Sequence record: ON529853.1
Strand: one strand, 5' to 3'
Length of the DNA stretch: 64,000 bases
In this document: positions 10,131 through 54,928 of the stretch, piece by piece
Layout: each line of letters opens with the position of its first letter
How positions within the stretch are numbered: position 1 is the first letter of the stretch
Notes under the pieces: generated by a model
The model's input: the letters and a program-made list of their open reading frames with translations, nothing else
Database searches by the model: none
What the model was told of the DNA's origin: nothing
Program-made: the position numbers and the translations under genes

Positions 10131-10679
10131 CTAGGCGGCGAAGCGGTCGATCATCCAGTGCAGGTCCTGCGGCTCGAAGGCGTCGAACTCCTCGATCAGG
10201 TCGGCGGTCACGGGAAAGGCGATCACTTCAGCCGAGGCGGGCGGGACGACGCTGCGGCGGCTGTCGGCCACGGCGCCCTTGCCGCGTCCGATACTCTGGC
10301 GTGGCTTCGCACCGCGTTTCGGCTTGTAGGTCGCCTTGCGGCGCAGGGCGTTGCTCTGCTTGGACGTCTCGGCGTCGTCGGCCCGCTTCAGCCCCAGGCG
10401 GTCGAGCCGGCCCAAGACGGCGCTGCGGCTGCGATTGCCCATGAGCAGGCTGATCTCCTGGGCGGTCTTGCCCTCCCGCCAGAGCCGGACCAGATCGTCA
10501 ACCTCGGCCTGGGGCCAGGCGTGGGTCGGCTTTTTCGGCTGCGCGGCCCTGCGGGCCTGGACCTTTGCGATCCGGCGCAGTTCCGCCCGCTCCTGCGGAT
10601 CAGCGGGAACCTCCATGTCGTCCCAGTCACCGGCGCCGCGCCAGTCTCGGCTCGGATCGCCTTCCAGAAGCGTCGTCAC
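10131..10679 (-). CDS. gcrA: GcrA-like transcriptional regulator (GcrA N-terminal HTH)
   Basis: AWPQAEVDDLVRLWREGKTAQEISLLMGNRSRSAVLGRLDRLGL matches the GcrA N-terminal pattern (W...L..LW..G.SA.QIA..LG..TR.AV.G...RLGL). GTG start overlaps the serS stop (GTGA). The C-terminus is shorter and divergent from host GcrA. Confidence 0.75.
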   Translation of the reverse strand: MTTLLEGDPSRDWRGAGDWDDMEVPADPQERAELRRIAKVQARRAAQPKKPTHAWPQAEVDDLVRLWREGKTAQEISLLMGNRSRSAVLGRLDRLGLKRADDAETSKQSNALRRKATYKPKRGAKPRQSIGRGKGAVADSRRSVVPPASAEVIAFPVTADLIEEFDAFEPQDLHWMIDRFAA

Positions 10680-11986
10680 CCCGCCAACCCGACTTCCGGC
10701 AGGCGCGGGCGCAGGTAGGGGACCAGGATGGCCGGCATGTCGACGCCGCCGTCGTCGGTCTGGTGGTTCTCGAACAGCGCCGCCAGGGTGCGGCCGACCG
10801 CCAGGCCGGAGCCGTTCAGGCTGTGCAGGTAGCCCAGCTTGCCGTCCGCCTGACGATAGCGACCCTTCATCCGCCGGGTCTGAAAGTCGCCGCACCAGGA
10901 GATCGAAGCGATCTCGACATAGCGTTGCTGGCTGGGCATCCAGACTTCCAGGTCGATGGTCTTGCGGGCGGCGAAGCCCATGTCGCCGGCGGCCAGCAGC
11001 ACCTTGCGATAGGGCAGGTCGAGGTATTGCAGGACCGTCTCGGCGCAGGCGACCTTGCGGGCGAACTCGGCCTCGGCCTGTTCAGGCTCGACCAGCGAGA
11101 CCAATTCCACCTTGTGGAACTGGTGTTGCCGGATCAGGCCGGTGGTGTCGCGCCCGGCGGCCCCGGCTTCGGCGCGGAAACAGGGCGTCAGGGCGGTGAA
11201 ACGCAGCGGCAGAGCCTCGCGCTCGGTGGTCTGCTCGCGCACCAGATTGGTCAGCGGCACCTCGCCCGTGGGGATCAGCAGGTTGCCGTCCGTCAACTGG
11301 AAGAGGTCGTCCTTGAACTTCGGCCATTGCCCGGTGGCGTACATGACGTTCGGCTTGACGATGAACGGCACCGACTTCTCGACATAGCCGTGCCGGTGCA
11401 CATGCAGGTCGAGCATGAACTGGCCCAGGGCGCGCTCGACGCTGGCGAAGGCGCCCGACAGGACGGCGTAGCGCGATCCGCTCAGCCAGCCGGCGACGGC
11501 GCTGTCATAGCTGTCCCCGGCCAGGGTGACATGGTCCTGGGGCTCGACGTAGGCGCGCCGCTGGCCCCATTCACTGAGAACGATGTTGTTCGCTTCTCCG
11601 CCCTCAGGGATGTCCTCGGCAGGCAGGTTCGGCAGTTGGTCCACCAGGCCCTCGCGGGCCTTGTAAAGGGCGTCCTCCTGCTTCGCCAACCGCTCCAGTC
11701 GCGGTTTGATCTCCACCATGCGCGCGCGCAGGGTCTCTTCCTCGGTCGGAGGCGCATCGTCTTCCCGCGCCGCCACCACGGGCCGATCGCCCCGGCGGAA
11801 TTCTCCGATCCGGGCCGAGATGGCGTTGCGTTCGGTCTGGAGCGCCTGGAGTTCGGTGCGGGTCGTCTGGAGGTCGCGGTGCGTCTCGCGGGCGTCGTCG
11901 ACGATGGCCTTCACCGCCCCGCCGCGTTTGGCGATCGCCGCGACGACCGCGTCCGGCTCATTGTCGATCAGGTGGAAATCAAGCAT
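10676..11986 (-). CDS. serS: Seryl-tRNA synthetase (bacterial type, full length)
   Basis: N-terminal coiled-coil arm, PTGEVPL, motif 2 CFRAEAGAAGRDTTGLIRQHQFHKVE, DLEVWMP, GDFQTRR, motif 3 LNGSGLAVGRT. Confidence 0.95.
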   Translation of the reverse strand: MLDFHLIDNEPDAVVAAIAKRGGAVKAIVDDARETHRDLQTTRTELQALQTERNAISARIGEFRRGDRPVVAAREDDAPPTEEETLRARMVEIKPRLERLAKQEDALYKAREGLVDQLPNLPAEDIPEGGEANNIVLSEWGQRRAYVEPQDHVTLAGDSYDSAVAGWLSGSRYAVLSGAFASVERALGQFMLDLHVHRHGYVEKSVPFIVKPNVMYATGQWPKFKDDLFQLTDGNLLIPTGEVPLTNLVREQTTEREALPLRFTALTPCFRAEAGAAGRDTTGLIRQHQFHKVELVSLVEPEQAEAEFARKVACAETVLQYLDLPYRKVLLAAGDMGFAARKTIDLEVWMPSQQRYVEIASISWCGDFQTRRMKGRYRQADGKLGYLHSLNGSGLAVGRTLAALFENHQTDDGGVDMPAILVPYLRPRLPEVGLAG

Positions 11987-23825: not shown

Positions 23826-24578
23826 CTAGGCTTCCTGGTTGCTCAGGGCGACGACCCGATCCAGCCCGATGGCGACCTCGAACACCGTCAGGCTGTTCTT
23901 GGGGGTCGTGCCCAGGTAGGGGTCGAATGTCGGGAAGTCGGTGCGGCGCGAGGTCGACGCGATTTCCTTGAACTCGGTGTGCGTCGGGACGGGGGACCAG
24001 AGGCCTTCGATGTCGATGGTCTCGGTGGCGTAGGTCGGCAGTCGGTCCGACGGGACCTGACGGGTCGGCTGACCGATGATCTGGGCCAGTTCGATCTCCA
24101 GAGCGTCCCGCAGCGCCGTGGCGTAGTCGGCGTGGCTGTCGGCGCGGTAGATGCACTGGAATTCCAGTTGGTAGAAGGCGTTGAACCGCAGTTTGGCGGC
24201 CGTGGCGCCGTCGGCGGCCTCGGTGCGGAACGACAGGCCGGCCTGCCATACGCATAGCGGCGGCTTGGCGCTGGTCGCCTGGAGCAGGTGCTGGGCGTAG
24301 AGATAGGAGCCCGGCGTGGTCTCGGCGCGCAGCGCCCAGGTCTCGGCGTTCATCTCGCGCCGCAACGAAAAGACGTCGTCGGCCTCGTAGGCGTCCGAGA
24401 AGCCGGCAAGCGGCATGATGACCGGCGCCTCGACCCGTTCCAGGCGCCAGGACTGGTTGAGGTCCAGAAGAGTGCGCTCGACGCACCCCTTCAGTCGACC
24501 GACCGCCTGCTCGCGCTGCTGAATTTCCTTTTCGCTCCAGAATCGCAGACCTGCGATCGGATATAGCGCGCGACTCAT
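23826..24578 (-). CDS. Stand-alone class II aminoacyl-tRNA synthetase catalytic domain (Gly/Pro/Thr-like core, no anticodon-binding domain)
   Basis: Motif 1-like VEAPVIMP, LRAETT, motif 2 GLSFRTE...RFNAFYQLEFQ, motif 3 FEVAIGLDR. The protein ends immediately after motif 3 (250 aa). Confidence 0.8.
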   Translation of the reverse strand: MSRALYPIAGLRFWSEKEIQQREQAVGRLKGCVERTLLDLNQSWRLERVEAPVIMPLAGFSDAYEADDVFSLRREMNAETWALRAETTPGSYLYAQHLLQATSAKPPLCVWQAGLSFRTEAADGATAAKLRFNAFYQLEFQCIYRADSHADYATALRDALEIELAQIIGQPTRQVPSDRLPTYATETIDIEGLWSPVPTHTEFKEIASTSRRTDFPTFDPYLGTTPKNSLTVFEVAIGLDRVVALSNQEA

Positions 24579-31322: not shown

Positions 31323-33420
31323 TTAGTCGGGCGCGTCACTGTCTTTAACGACGTCAGACCGGGGAGGGTTCAACGCCAACAGGACGGTTTTACCGACGCT
31401 CAAGGGATCGACGCCGGCCGCCAGGGCGTCGTGCAGCCGTGAGCCCAGGGCGCGCTCGCCCAGACGTTGCATGGCGAAGTCGACATGGGCGTCGATCTCG
31501 CTCTTGGCGTTCTCGCTCATCTCGGTGATCGCTTCGTGGGCCTGCTCGGCCACATAGGGCATGTTGGCGGTGAAGTCGCGCTCGGCCTGGGCCAGTGTCG
31601 CCAGAACGTCGTTGAGATCGCCCTTGCGGACCGACCCGCCCGCCAGCAAGGCCTCCAGCGCCTTCCGGGCCTGGGTTAGCCCTTCGGCGGCCGAAGACGC
31701 CTTCTTGGAGATGGCCTCGCGGAAGGTTTCTTCGTCATGTTTGTGTCGCCCAGGATCGCGCGGCGTCAGATAGTCGCCGGTCTGGGGATCACGGTAGCGT
31801 CGCAGGGTGCAGGGCACGCCGCCCGTGTTGAACGACGACAGCAGGCGCGCCCACTGGACTTCGCTCATTTCAACGCGAGCGACCGAACGGTTCTCGTGGA
31901 CGCGATCTCCAGCGTCGCGTTTGACCAGTTGGGCCGTGCTGATTTCCAGGATGATGGCGTGCCCCTGGGGGTAGTCGACCATGAACAGGTCTGACTCGCC
32001 TGACACTCGCGCCACGGTCACCATGCCGAACGACGGATGCTCGACCTCATGGCCGTGCAGGTCCCGGTCGCGCACGTCGACCGCGATGATCCGGGCGGGG
32101 TCGTCGATTTCATCCCAACGCGACAGCAGGCTGCCGCTGTTGTTGCGGGCGACGAACACCACGCGCGGCTCGGAGAGCATGACCGCGTTGAGTTTGTCAT
32201 TCCCCGAGATGCCGCCGTAATGCTGGAAGTCGTGCGGCTTGATCCCCATCAGGGCGCAGGCCTCCTTCTGGGTCGGGGCCGCGACGTAGCAGTGCGCCTG
32301 GTTGTGGTGCGGCGACACCGCCTTCAGGCGCGGATCGGTCTTCATGTACCAGTAGACGTGCAGGCGTTCAGTCATGGGTCCTCCGGGGAGCGTCGTCAGG
32401 ATTTTCTGTAAAGGAATGATTTGCCGAGGTCAAGCGCCCAGCTTGACCCAGGCGGCGTCGCGACGTTCGTGGGTCTGGACCCAGCCGTCGTAACGGGGCT
32501 GGTGGTAGGCGATTTCGCCCGCCAGGGTTTCGATTTCGTGGCGAATGTTGCGCAGCTTGGCGGCTTTGAGGCGGTCGTAGGTCACCTCGGGATGCTGGGC
32601 GCGGCGGATCGCCTTAGTCGCCTCGAAGACAGCCTCGAAGGTCCCTCGGGTCACCATATGCCGGGCGGTCTGGGCCTTGGACCAGGCGTTGGGCCGCGTC
32701 GTCTCATCCGCGAAGGTCCAAGTCAGCGCATGGGTTTCGGCTTCGGTGTCGATCAGCGCCTTTTCGGCGACGACCTTGCTCGTCCGCAGCATCTTCAGCA
32801 TGGCGCCGAGACGTTCGCGCGAGACTTCCCACGGCAGCGACTTCGCCCCGTAGCAGGAGGCCGTCTGCCAGCCTGAGCCCGGCCGCTGATAGCCGTGGTG
32901 GGCGATCTCACCCGTCTCCGCCAGAATACCGCGCTGGCAGCATTGGCAGGTCATCGCCTTGGCGTCGCGTTCTTCACGGGCGATCGAGGTTTTCGAGGGG
33001 CGCGGCGCCCGCTTGCCGATCAGGGGTTTGAGGCCGTCGAGCGCCTGAGCCAGGGGCAGCATTTCCTCCAGCAAGGCGACCATGGCGTCGCGCATGGCGC
33101 TTTCGCCTTTGAAGGCCTTCGCCTTCTTCAGATAACCCGCCACCAGATGCGGATAGGGATGGCCCAGGCTCCAGGCCAGGTCCTGCTCCTTCTCGGAGAG
33201 GGACGACATCGCCCCGTTCCAGCGGAAACCGTCGCCGATCACCTTTTTCCAGGCGGCGTCGATGGCGTTGGAGACGTGGTATTTGACGTCGGCGAATTCC
33301 GCCTTGATCAGGACGCCTTCCGCCTGGAAGCCGGCGATCTTGCCCAGAGCGCCTTCGAGGTTTTGGGCGTAGCGGTCCGAGATATTAGCGAACATCGTGG
33401 GGAAATCGGTCGGCGTCATG
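31323..33420 (-). CDS. Hypothetical proteins 31323..32375 and 32430..33420 (latter with CQCC...HGY...C metal motif)
   Basis: ORF track. Each sits behind a class A promoter. Confidence 0.7.
32407..32433 (-). promoter_or_regulatory. Class A phage promoter
   Basis: Minus strand TTGACCTCGGCAAATCATTCCTTTACA. Confidence 0.78.
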
Positions 33421-33451: not shown

Positions 33452-33478
33452 TGTAAAGGAACGATTTGAGGATGTCAA
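33452..33478 (-). promoter_or_regulatory. Class A phage promoter
   Basis: Minus strand TTGACATCCTCAAATCGTTCCTTTACA. Confidence 0.8.
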
Positions 33479-33594: not shown

Positions 33595-36500
33595 ATGGCT
33601 CCTGTCCGCACGAAGCGCATCGCGCTCGTCTCTACGCGCATCCCCAACTACCCTCACCGCAAGAAGGACGGCGGCGGCTCTGGCGGCGGAATGTCCGGCC
33701 CCCAGGTCCATGACGTCGTCTTCGACGGCCCCGCCTCCATTACCGAGGGCGCCGCGCCCGGCACCGTGGTCGTCGGCGTGTCCACCCTGCCGCCGGAAGC
33801 GGAACTGACCCTGGTCAATGACGCCGGCGGGCGCTTCGCCCTCGATGGGAACGTCCTGGTCGCCGGCGCGACCCCGACTGATTATGAGGCCGCCACCCAG
33901 CACACCGTGGTCATCCGAGGCGCCCTGGGCGCCAGCACCCTGGACAAGCCCCTGGTGGTGTCGGTGGTGGACCTGGAGGAACTGATCGACTTCGATCTGA
34001 CCGGCCTGACGGTGCGCGAAGACGCCGCCCAGGGCGTGGTCGTCGGCGCCCTGTCCTCGAACCCGACCGGTGCGGCCTTCACCCTGACCGGCGACGCCGG
34101 CGGACGCTTCGCCTTGTCGGGCGCGAATATCGTGCGCGGCGCGACGGCGCTCGATTATGAAGCCGCCACCAGCCACGACATCACCATCAGCGCCGCCCTG
34201 GGCGGCGAGATCATCAACAAGACCTACACCATCCAGGTCACCGACCTCGACGAACTGACCAGCTTCACTCTGTCGGCCAGCACCATTGCGGAAAACTCGC
34301 CGGCCGGCACCGCTGTGGGCACGCTGTCGTCGGTCCCCGCCGGGGCCTCGTTCACCCTGGTTAACACCGCCGGAAACCGCTTCGCGTTGACGGGCGGGAC
34401 CCAGATTGTCGCGGGCGCGGTCGCCACCGACTATGAGGCCGCCACCAGCCACCAGGTCACGGTCCGCGCGACCCGCCTGGGCGAAACGATCGAGCAGCCC
34501 TTCACGATCACCGTCTCCAACGTCAATGAACTGACCAACATCACCCTGAGCGGGACGACGGTGGTGGAGAACACGGGGCCGGGCGTCACCGTCGGAACCC
34601 TGGCCTCGGTCCCCGCCGGCGCGTCTTTCGCGCTGACGAACACCGCCGGCAACCGCTTCGCCGTCTCGGGCGCCAACCTGGTGACGGGTGCGGTGAGCAC
34701 CAACTACGAAGCCGCAACCAGCCATAGCGTGACGGTCGAGGCGACGCGTGGCGCCGACGTCATCACCCGCACCTTCACCATCGACGTGACGGACGTCGTC
34801 GAGCCGCTGTCCATCGACCTCGCGCCCGCAACCATCGCCGAAAACTCGCCTCAGGGCACCCTGGTCGGCACTCTGACGTCGGAGCCCGCCGGCGCGACCT
34901 ATACGCTGTCGGACGCGGCGGGCAGTCGTTTCGCCCTGGCGGGCGACACCATCGTCGTCGGGACGGTCCTGACGGACTTCGAGACGGCCGCGAGCCATGC
35001 GATCACGGTGGATGCGGAACTGGACGGCGTGCAGACGTCGCGCACCTTCACCATCACCGTGGCGAATGTCGCCGAACTCACCGACATCACCCTGTCCAAC
35101 ACCACTGTGGCGGAAAACATCGCCAGCGGCGCCGTCGTGGGCGCCCTGACCTCGACGCCGGGCGGCGCGACCTGGACTCTCGTGGACGGCGCCAGCGGCC
35201 GCTTCTCCATCACGGGCAACAACGTCGTGCGCGGCGCGACCGCGCTCGACTATGAGGCGGCGACCTCGCACGCCATCACCGTACGTGGCACGCGCGGCGG
35301 GGAGACGCTGGAGAAGACCTTCACCATCACGGTCACCAATGTCGTTGAAATCAGCGACATCACGCTGTCGGCGAACACGACCCCGGAAAACTCCGTCGCC
35401 CCCGCCGTGGTGGGCGCGCTGTCGTCGACGCCGGCCGGCGCCAGCTTCGTGATGACGAACAACGCCGCCAACCGCTTCGCCCTGTCGGGGAACAACGTCG
35501 TGCGCGGCGCCACGGCGCTCGATTACGAGAACGCCACCTCGCACGACATCACCATCCGGGGGACCCGCCAAGGCGAGACCTTCGACAAGACGTTCACCAT
35601 CAACGTCACCAACGTCAACGAGATCACCGACATCACGCTGTCGCCGGCGACGGCGTCGGAAAGCATCGCCCAAGGCGCGGTCATCGGCGCCCTGGCGTCG
35701 GTCCCCGCCGGAGCGTCCTTCACCCTGACGGATACGGTCGGCGGCCGCTTCGCCATTTCGGGCTCCAACCTGGTGCGCGGAACGACGGCGCTCGACTATG
35801 AGGCCGCCACCTCGCACTCCGTCCAGGTCCAGGCGACCCTGGGTCCGGACACCTTCAACAAGACGCTGACGGTCACGGTGACCAATGTCGCCGAACTGAC
35901 GGCGATCAACCTGTCGGCGAGCACGATCGCCGAGAACTCCGTGGCGGGCACCGTCGTGGGCGGCCTGACGTCGACCCCGGCGGGCGCGACCTTCACGATG
36001 ACCGGCAACGCCGGCAATCGCTTCGCCCTGTCTGGCAACAACGTCGTCGCCGGATCGGTCTCGACCGATTACGAAGCCGCGACCAGTCACGAGGTGACGA
36101 TCCAGGGCGCGCGCGGCGGCGAAACCCTCAACCAGACCTTCACGATCAACGTGACCGACGTGGTGGAGACCGTGCCGCAGCCGGAAGTAAGCCGACCGGC
36201 CCAGACTGACATCATGATCACGCAGGAATACGCCTACTCGGGCTCGCCGGACGGCGACCTCGTCGGCGTCCTGCTGGCGATTCCGAAGACCAAGGCGGAA
36301 TATTCCGCCTATGTGTCGGGCGTGACCTATACCCTGCTCGACGACGCGGGCGGCCGCTTCAAGCTGGCGTCGGGGTCGTCCTATTCCCGCCAACTGCTGG
36401 CGGGTCCGACGGCGACCAACGACGCTGTCGCCGCTGAGCACACCATCACCGTGCGCGCTGAGTGGGGCGGCGGGGCCTATACGCGCGATCAGACCATCGT

Positions 36501-52967: not shown

Positions 52968-53042
52968 GCGCTGGCGTGAGATCGTTGACAGAACGAACTG
53001 ATTCGTCTACGCCGGTTCCTGACGAAGACGCAAGGAGGCCGC

Positions 53043-53345
53043 ATGTACGCCATCATCATGTCCGACGCCCGGACGATCGGCAAGAAGCCGGCGTTGAAGC
53101 TGGGCTGGGTGACCAAGTCCCTGCCGGACGGCGGCGTGCGCGCCAACGTCGCGCCGCTGACCTCGCTGCGCAATCCGAAGTGGTCCAAGACCACCCGCTA
53201 CGTCCGGGGCAATCAGATCGCCCAGATGTTCGGCCCGAACGTCAAGCCGACGACCGCTGAGATCAAGGCGATCCGGGACCGGTTGAAGCCCTACCAGCCC
53301 CGTGCGGAGGGCTTCGCCGACATGGGACATTACGGCGGCGTTTGA
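53043..53345 (+). CDS. Hypothetical basic protein
   Basis: AAGGAGG RBS. Confidence 0.65.
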   Translation: MYAIIMSDARTIGKKPALKLGWVTKSLPDGGVRANVAPLTSLRNPKWSKTTRYVRGNQIAQMFGPNVKPTTAEIKAIRDRLKPYQPRAEGFADMGHYGGV

Positions 53346-53346
53346 C

Positions 53347-53375
53347 TTGACGCCGTGAATCCTGACGGTTAATGA
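53347..53375 (+). promoter_or_regulatory. Class B promoter TTGACG-N17-TAATGA with ATCCTGACGG and a GANTC in the spacer
   Basis: TTGACG CCGTGAATCCTGACGGT TAATGA. Confidence 0.7.
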
Positions 53376-53427
53376 CGCAGATAACGGCAATCACGCCGTC
53401 TTCATCATGCGCCGTTAACCATGTCTG

Positions 53428-53443
53428 TTAACCGGTGGTTAAC
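53428..53443 (+). promoter_or_regulatory. Consensus CtrA binding site TTAA-N7-TTAAC
   Basis: TTAA-CCGGTGG-TTAAC with extra half-sites TTAACC (53415) and TTAA (53445), 32 bp before the flotillin ATG. Confidence 0.8.
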
Positions 53444-53475
53444 CTTAATGGTCCGGCGCCCACCAAGGATTCACT

Positions 53476-54864
53476 ATGCCTTTCGTTTTGATCGGAGGCG
53501 CCGTCTTTGGCGTCATTCTGGTGCTCGCCCTGCTGGTCGCGCTTATGCTGCGCCGCGTCGTTCCCACCAACATGGTCCACATCGTTCAGCGCGGTAAGAC
53601 GACCATCTCCTACGGCAAGGGCAAGGAAGCCGGCAACGTCTACTACGAGTGGCCCCAGTCGGTGCCGGCGCTCGGCGTGACCGTGACCCGCTTCCCCGAG
53701 AGCGTCTTCGACGTCAGCCTGGCGAACTACGAAGCCTACGACATCGGCCGCCTGCCGTTCGTGGTCGACATCGTCGCCTTCTACCGCGTCGAGAACTCCG
53801 AGACCGCCGCCCAGCGCGTCGCCTCGTTCGATGAACTTCAGCAGCAACTTAAGTCGGTCCTCCAGGGCGCGGTGCGCACCATCCTGTCGACCAACAAGCT
53901 GGAAGAGATCATGCAGGACCGGGCCAAGCTGGGCACCGAGTTCACCGCCGAGGTCAACCATCAGCTTCAGGAATGGGGCGTGACCACCGTCAAGTCCATC
54001 GAGTTCATGGACATCCGCGACAGCAGCGGCTCGAAGGTCATCGCCAACATGATGGCGAAGGAACAGTCGCGCATCGAGAAGGAAAGCCGCATCACCGTCG
54101 CGGAAAACCTGCGCGAAGCTGAACTGAAGGAAATCGACGCCGACCGCGTCGTCGAGGTCCAGAAGCAGGACGCCCAACAACAACTCGGCATCCGCACCGC
54201 CGAGAAGGAACGCGCCGTTGGCATCGCCGATGAGCAGACGCGTCAGGAAGTCCTGCTGGAAAGCAAGCTGACCGCCGAGCGCCAGATGGACGTCCAGAAG
54301 ATCAACGACGTGAAGACGGCCGAGATCGCCAAGGACGTCGCGATCGTCAAGGCCGAGCAGGACCGCGAAGTCCTGGTGGTCAAGTCGGAAGCCGAGAAGC
54401 GCCAGACCGTCATCGCGGCCGAGGCGCAGAAGGAGCGCACCGAAGTCGTCGCCCAGGGCGATCTCGCGGCGGCCCAGAACCAGGCCCAGGGCCTGCAAGC
54501 CATCGGCGAGGCCAAGGCCAAGGCGGAAGAAGCCATCCTGATGGCGCCGGTCACCGCCCAGATCACCCTCGCCAAGGAGATCGGCGAGAACCAGCCCTAC
54601 CAGCAGTATCTGATCACGGTCGAGCAGATCAAGGCGGGCCAGGCGGTCGGCACCGAGATGGCCCAGGCCCTGAAGAGCGCCGACCTCAAGGTCATCGCCA
54701 ACGCGGGCGACGTCCAGTCGGGCGTGGCGTCGCTGGGCGGCATCCTGTCCCCGGCGGGCGGCACCGCCATCGCCGGCGCCCTGTCGGCGCTGTCGCAACT
54801 GCCCGAGGGTAAGGCCCTGGTGGAGCGTCTCACCGGCGTCGACAAGGCGGCGAGCGCCGGTTGA
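53476..54864 (+). CDS. SPFH/band-7 flotillin-like membrane protein
   Basis: N-terminal TM, SPFH domain (LQGAVRTIL...LEEIMQDR...WGV....EFMDI) and long AE/EA-rich coiled coil. Confidence 0.9.
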   Translation: MPFVLIGGAVFGVILVLALLVALMLRRVVPTNMVHIVQRGKTTISYGKGKEAGNVYYEWPQSVPALGVTVTRFPESVFDVSLANYEAYDIGRLPFVVDIVAFYRVENSETAAQRVASFDELQQQLKSVLQGAVRTILSTNKLEEIMQDRAKLGTEFTAEVNHQLQEWGVTTVKSIEFMDIRDSSGSKVIANMMAKEQSRIEKESRITVAENLREAELKEIDADRVVEVQKQDAQQQLGIRTAEKERAVGIADEQTRQEVLLESKLTAERQMDVQKINDVKTAEIAKDVAIVKAEQDREVLVVKSEAEKRQTVIAAEAQKERTEVVAQGDLAAAQNQAQGLQAIGEAKAKAEEAILMAPVTAQITLAKEIGENQPYQQYLITVEQIKAGQAVGTEMAQALKSADLKVIANAGDVQSGVASLGGILSPAGGTAIAGALSALSQLPEGKALVERLTGVDKAASAG

Positions 54865-54886: not shown

Positions 54887-54917
54887 AAAACGGCCGGTCA
54901 AACGACCGGCCGTTTTT
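54887..54917 (+). terminator. Intrinsic terminator
   Basis: AAAACGGCCGGTC-AAAC-GACCGGCCGTTTTT. Confidence 0.9.
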
Positions 54918-54928
54918 GTCGGTGAGGG

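Follow-up and report, generated by a model that had tools for sequence, protein, structure and literature searches.

The window analysed here is a 64,000-nucleotide stretch of the Brevundimonas phage vB_BpoS-Bambus (ON529853.1, bases 124,001-188,000), and positions below are those of the window unless a sequence record is named. It holds a gene that is annotated as flotillin in five phage records and whose product is a member of the SPFH/Band 7 family, with 69.2 bits for PF01145 against a gathering cut-off of 23.6 (Table 1). Since an intrinsic-terminator-like hairpin lies 3' of this gene, it constitutes a single-gene unit. On its 5' side is located a 100-aa open reading frame without a Pfam match, and no terminator was found between this open reading frame and the flotillin promoter.

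The promoter assigned to the flotillin-like gene is of the sigma-70 type. It follows a TTGACR-N16-18-TAnnnn pattern whose members recur across the window, and its activity is predicted. A previous reading of this DNA, made from the sequence alone, had placed a promoter with a TTAA-overlapping -10 upstream of a cluster of CtrA sites, and this assignment holds: the element reads TTGACG-N17-TAATGA, and a TTAA (53369-53372), the fifth of the locus, overlaps the -10. The spacer contains GAATC (53357-53361). Based on the hexamers only, transcription is predicted to start near 53382, which would place the array described below at about +33 to +67. In one RNA-virome run, the region is represented by no more than scattered contigs, 2-3 deep, which are most likely carried-over DNA and from which no start is readable, while three further RNA runs added nothing on its transcription. 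A minus-strand promoter-like match (TTAACA-N16-CATGAT) was set aside, as its sole product would be antisense RNA running into the upstream open reading frame. Elsewhere in the window, a recurrent sigma-70-type subclass, TTGACA-N11-ttcctt-TACAnC, precedes many minus-strand genes (for example at 33478, 22132, 18220, 10065 and 7565), and a second promoter subclass reads TTGACAgacagc...TAGTGA.

Table 1. Features of the flotillin locus (window positions).
Feature	Position	Strand	Detail or basis
Upstream ORF, 100 aa	53043-53345	+	Own sigma-70-type promoter at 52985
Sigma-70-type promoter (predicted)	53347-53375	+	-35 TTGACG 53347-53352, 17-nt spacer, -10 TAATGA 53370-53375
GTGAATCCT, left arm of perfect 9-bp inverted repeat	53355-53363	+	GANTC and anti-Shine-Dalgarno TCCT
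Imperfect palindrome, 51 nt, enclosing the whole array	53409-53459	+	RNA three-tier hairpin, -24.8 kcal/mol
GTTAACC, three copies	53414-53420, 53427-53433, 53438-53444	+	Start-to-start spacing 13 and 11
CtrA half-site word GTTAACCAT	53414-53422	+	Sequence match
Perfect TTAA-N7-TTAAC box, TTAA-CCGGTGG-TTAAC	53428-53443	+	About +47 to +62 of the predicted start
11-mer GTTAACCTTAA, signature of the phage's dense TTAA arrays	53438-53448	+	Word count
Fourth TTAA	53445-53448	+	Sequence match
AGGATTCAC, right arm of perfect 9-bp inverted repeat	53466-53474	+	Overlaps Shine-Dalgarno
Flotillin-like SPFH/Band 7 gene, 462 aa, N-terminal hydrophobic segment	53476-54864	+	Pfam PF01145, E = 5.8e-19
Intrinsic-terminator-like hairpin and T run, 3' of the flotillin gene	54895-54920	+	Sequence

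The 130-bp gap preceding the flotillin-like gene contains a 35-bp array (53414-53448) separated from the ATG by 27 nt. A CtrA-box cluster had been called at this place, and its content was confirmed, with four TTAA within 34 bp (53415-53448) and a perfect box at 53428-53443. Counted from the start codon, the four TTAA, the full box and one copy of GTTAACCAT lie 28-62 nt upstream. The box is non-random. TTAA-N7-TTAA occurs once in the 64-kb window and in none of 100 dinucleotide-preserving shuffles, and the site matches the CtrA consensus, with two TTAA at an exact 7-nt spacing, the 3' C and GTTAAC flanks, in an intergenic position at a promoter. Isolated TTAAC are found in the window at chance level (16, for 18 expected).

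The full-genome scan for CtrA boxes that had been put forward along with the cluster revealed a genome-wide system of which the flotillin box is one element. Bambus carries 74 perfect boxes and the other four phages 68-72 each, compared to 0-1 for a reversed control pattern. In Bambus, 73 of the 74 boxes are gathered in one 38-kb block outside the window, which wraps the record origin (ON529853.1 335,363-348,100 and 1-25,874, equivalent to ON529851.1 50,058-88,356), and the flotillin site is the only outlier. It is the sole perfect box in the approximately 308 kb outside the block. As TTAA occurs there at about 0.3 per kb, roughly 0.03 chance boxes are expected in these 308 kb by our own arithmetic; this density, like the genome-wide matrix scan below, was obtained on the Marchewka record carrying the Bambus window sequence.

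As annotated for the corresponding part of Marchewka, the block consists of small hypothetical genes that run in one direction and adjoin the terminase genes. Its promoter architecture was read from the Marchewka copy, while box and word counts were made on Bambus itself. Once oriented on the gene strand, 50 of the 70 Marchewka sites lie 41-75 nt before an annotated start codon, and the consensus of the corresponding promoters reads TTAACcTcTTGTTAAc (also written ggcgTTAACcTcTTGTTAAc), followed after about 10 nt by cTAgg.t. In this consensus, the box occupies the -35 region, upstream of a Caulobacter-type -10. The other sites belong to dense arrays of GTTAACCTTAA or its complement located 44-68 nt upstream of the primary box, and further arrays are 32-bp tandem repeats in a non-coding stretch at the block end. 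The 32-bp repeat, present in 4.2 copies and composed of GTTAACCAT and GTTAAGGTTAAC words, extends over about 86,746-86,880 of ON529851.1 (about 24,250-24,365 in Bambus), in the non-coding DNA that separates the block from the terminase genes, and 16-, 48- and 49/100-bp tandem arrays are found just past it. This tandem-repeat region may be a regulatory hub, an origin or a genome-end region. Neither CtrA nor GcrA nor flotillin is mentioned in the published description of the Brevundimonas giant phages, and the box-rich block is not reported there (PMC10070969).

The flotillin array is written in the vocabulary of the block. Of the 52 copies of the 11-mer GTTAACCTTAA in Bambus, 50 fall in the block, one just outside it at record position 32,147 and one at the flotillin gene, and of the 17 copies of GTTAACCAT, 12 are in the block; both words are missing from the control. 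Extended 13-14-mers of the flotillin array also recur in the block. A long duplication from the block into the array was sought, and only words of 12-14 nt proved to be in common. From this shared wording, the array clearly appears to belong to the same system as the block. Outside the block, GTTAACCAT is present in five copies, that of the flotillin array included, against about 0.6 expected genome-wide by base composition, and the isolated GTTAACCAT or GTTAACCTTAA words at 34,684, 207,138, 233,059, 236,759 and 32,147 of ON529853.1 may be further single CtrA half-sites. When a weight matrix was built from the 50 primary block boxes, the flotillin box was by far the best-scoring site in the window, at 16.9 bits versus a training minimum of 19.7 and a median of 32.9 in the block. 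Genome-wide, one further site outside the block exceeded 10 bits with this matrix: TGAAC-N6-GTTAAG, with one mismatch, at 276,411-276,432 of ON529851.1, about 64 nt before MARCHEWKA_05180.

With 2 kb of sequence surrounding the array as the query, matches were obtained to five Brevundimonas pondensis giant siphophages (Dolichocephalovirinae), with 100% identity for Marchewka and Bambus and 93% for Kabachok, Domovoi and Papperlapapp. Away from this query, Marchewka and the Bambus window differ at many positions, while 14001-64000 of the window are identical to 138,001-188,000 of ON529853.1, which assigns the window to Bambus and not to its sister Marchewka. Kabachok, Domovoi and Papperlapapp retain the three GTTAACC and every TTAA unchanged; with a divergence of only about 5% between the sister phages in the intergenic DNA, this conservation does not by itself carry significance. 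The only more distant flotillin relative from a possibly related phage, with 73% protein identity to that of Bambus, is encoded on an uncultured viral 74-kb fragment (IMG/VR UViG_3300042892_005180), in the whole of which, including upstream of flotillin, no TTAA-N7-TTAA was found. The array is thus not intrinsic to phage flotillin genes. The remaining phage flotillin homologues belong to phages of hosts outside Alphaproteobacteria, where CtrA is not expected.

We tentatively propose that the leader array is an operator for host CtrA~P, most likely repressing the flotillin-like gene while CtrA~P is high. The binding of host CtrA to the array is probable, and a negative polarity, once binding is granted, is somewhat favored. 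According to this proposal, the promoter would drive the flotillin-like gene from a start near 53382, and the array would form, within the transcribed leader, a binding platform for the host response regulator. As the array has no -10 of its own, bound CtrA~P would most likely hinder transcription. Flotillin would then be made mainly at low CtrA~P, after the swarmer-to-stalked transition or once infection lowers CtrA, in a phase opposite to that of the approximately 50 block promoters, whose box at -35 should activate. A repressive polarity of this kind has been reported for a comparable array, that of phage vB_BsubS-Delta. No phage-encoded OmpR-type (Trans_reg_C, winged-helix) response regulator was found in Bambus, so the regulator would be that of the host. 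Of 121 genomes sampled from the class to which a MAG titled Alphaproteobacteria belongs, an unpublished one included, 84 gave a CtrA-like match, a tally on which no claim made here depends. CtrA repression sites normally overlap the -10 or the start, and a box located 47-62 nt downstream of the start would be in an unusual position. That the box scores below every block promoter (16.9 versus at least 19.7 bits) also counts against a leader operator, and the palindromic extension of the array hints at an RNA-level or other dyad-symmetric function. An essential CtrA is reported for B. subvibrioides (PMC9437464).

Regarding polarity, the flotillin gene had been proposed to be gated by CtrA through either a roadblock or activation. 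The first option is in line with the repression-type anatomy of the locus, the box being downstream of the promoter, while for the second the elements of the activated class are missing. Indeed, the flotillin box has neither the TTG before the 3' half-site, nor the T at +5, nor the CTAnnnT -10; the -10-equivalent positions read CGGCGC; the box ends 33 nt before the ATG, outside the 41-75 nt of the activated class; and a full-promoter weight matrix gave no hit at this box. Together with the sigma-70-type promoter upstream, the missing TTG, T at +5 and CTAnnnT favor repression, and, as far as its sequence features can tell, the array is not a block-type promoter. If it nevertheless belonged to a promoter activated by CtrA, RNA polymerase would be recruited to a weak -10 such as TTAATG (53445-53450) by CtrA~P occupying 53428-53443 or the 53415/53428 pair, and flotillin would be switched on with the block genes. 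Such an arrangement would agree with the activating position of all other perfect boxes near genes, in this phage and in phiCbK, and in the upstream promoter the -10 region is likewise formed by TTAATG. It is unlikely given the missing elements, a start which by block geometry would land inside the Shine-Dalgarno sequence, and a TTAA-to-TTAATG spacing that is 2-3 nt out of register.

The functional unit could also be the RNA, with the 51-nt hairpin and the 9-bp pairing with the Shine-Dalgarno sequence controlling mRNA stability or translation. For example, read-through transcripts would be silenced and transcripts starting at 53382 translatable, the TTAA words being incidental building blocks. 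The leader hairpin is more stable than expected from dinucleotide shuffles (z = -4.1), also when the TTAA words are kept fixed (z = -2.9, p about 0.003), and the predicted fold of the whole intergenic RNA, in which the Shine-Dalgarno is paired, has an energy of -49.8 kcal/mol (z = -3.8). The inverted repeat is perfect. Its right arm AGGATTCAC overlaps both the Shine-Dalgarno AAGGA (53465-53469) and a second GANTC (53468-53472), and its left arm GTGAATCCT lies in the promoter spacer, upstream of the predicted start, so that a transcript starting at 53382 would not include it. In a read-through transcript from the upstream gene, from which no terminator separates the flotillin promoter, the ribosome-binding site is predicted to be closed according to the folding model. 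Against a control exerted by the RNA, no covariation was found in the leader stem among the sister phages, and the only stem substitution, T53449C in Papperlapapp, breaks a pair yet keeps the TTAA. The block uses the same words in direct and inverted orientation with a constant TTAA phasing, which favors DNA recognition; no Rfam 15 covariance model matched 53200-53600 at E up to 1; and the chance expectation for a 9-bp inverted repeat in 141 nt is about 0.04 by our own estimate. We consider it improbable that the RNA is the functional unit, and retain the RNA structure as an alternative to the operator or as a layer on top of it.

Alternatively, the TTAA words might be read by a factor other than CtrA, such as a dimeric DNA-binding protein of the phage, or host SciP at GTTAACCAT. 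This word has been proposed as a SciP-associated motif. The spacer bases of the block consensus (C, T and TTG) are strongly conserved beyond the canonical CtrA consensus, and the palindromic arrangement of the 11-mer pairs suggests a binding protein of dyad symmetry. No phage protein emerged as a candidate, and the identical design of phiCbK is bound by purified CtrA~P and is ctrA-dependent, while SciP, DnaA and GcrA sites gave no positional signal (PMC9437464), which makes a reader other than CtrA quite improbable. Lastly, the array could be a functionless relic of the block, copied or recombined to this place and leaving flotillin unaffected, which would fit its lineage-specific presence (it is missing from the IMG/VR relative) and the frequent gain and loss of CtrA boxes (PMC9437464), but is very improbable for an array that shares only words, and no long duplicated segment, with the block, is intact in five of five phages and sits precisely between the promoter and the ribosome-binding site of a single-gene unit.

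The wider circuit drawn by the sequence-only reading, in which the flotillin locus was connected with a GcrA-like gene, an XRE and a half-site in the cadherin promoter, is not borne out. The cadherin promoter contains a single GTTAAC in its spacer, and the frequencies of GTTAAC and TTAAC outside the array are those expected by chance; no evidence was found linking the GcrA-like open reading frame or an XRE to the flotillin locus. The former (10131-10895, minus strand) carries a GcrA DNA-binding domain (PF07750, 41.9 bits), and an open reading frame with this domain is known for phiCbK-like phages. GANTC is strongly under-represented in the window (83 sites versus about 204 expected from base composition). 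A link of GANTC and GcrA to promoters was considered and rejected: besides its depletion, GANTC is found in just two promoter spacers, those of the adjacent promoters at 52985 and 53347, and is hence not a general promoter feature. A seryl-tRNA synthetase-like gene is also present (10676-11986, minus strand). Its best genomic relatives are from Halomonas and Holosporales, at 43-48% identity, with no Brevundimonas match, so this gene is not host-like.

If the array is indeed a repressing CtrA~P operator, approximately 50 promoters would be on in the presence of CtrA~P, while a single leader operator would hold a gene for an SPFH membrane scaffold off until CtrA~P disappears, and membrane remodelling would coincide with the swarmer-to-stalked transition and with the start of replication. 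At the flotillin site, the array precedes a gene whose domain (SPFH/flotillin) is recognisable, and its architecture predicts a polarity opposite to that of the other boxes of the phage, which allows a simple test of CtrA-on and CtrA-off programmes side by side in one phage. In its fullest form, in which one phage combines both CtrA polarities and this timing of membrane remodelling with RNA silencing of read-through so that only the gated promoter yields protein, the scheme is doubtful.

It has been shown that alphaproteobacterial phages dependent on pili or flagella read the host cell cycle via CtrA boxes (Mascolo et al., 2022; PMC9437464). In phiCbK-like phages and some other pilus- or flagellum-dependent phages, these boxes are clustered in terminal-repeat or gap regions, and none of the genes found behind them has a known function (PMC9437464). 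CtrA~P shifts the promoter DNA of CbK_gp005 and gp018, and both promoters are nearly silent in a ctrA(ts) strain (PMC9437464). phiCbK belongs, like Bambus, to the subfamily Dolichocephalovirinae and has the same TTAAC...GTTAAC half-sites. Its gp005, gp018 and gp020 promoters have the design of the approximately 50 block promoters of Bambus, the gp020 box being identical. With 74 boxes versus only 3 unique perfect boxes in phiCbK, the Brevundimonas giant phages are the most extreme case among the phages compared here. In contrast to those of gp005 and gp018, the flotillin box is off the -35 and is devoid of the TTG, T+5 and CTAnnnT elements; unlike in phiCbK, a sigma-70-type promoter is located upstream of it, the block is far away, and the gene that it precedes has a recognisable domain.

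A closer parallel for the arrangement is DELTA_120 of vB_BsubS-Delta, where CtrA binds to an array of full and half-sites within 81 bp of the start codon, with repression of the gene as the outcome (PMC9437464). Both phages infect Brevundimonas, and in both a dense mixture of several half-sites and at least one full site is found within about 80 bp upstream of a start codon. vB_BsubS-Delta is however unrelated and its array far larger (30 TTAA in a 1.3-kb gap), whereas the flotillin array has only four TTAA and one full box, and the position of its promoter relative to the array is inferred here. In Caulobacter, where CtrA is able to activate and to repress, several CtrA sites with 6-bp, 7-bp and longer spacings tune the single promoter of pilA (PMC11264516). 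The flotillin array would likewise offer several sites at varied spacings to one promoter; the extra sites of pilA are upstream of an activating -35 site, whereas those of flotillin lie in the leader, where no activating site is present. The flotillin site is thus an extension of a published phage strategy and not a new principle, and with its array the published class of phage genes read by CtrA would gain a new member that differs in architecture.
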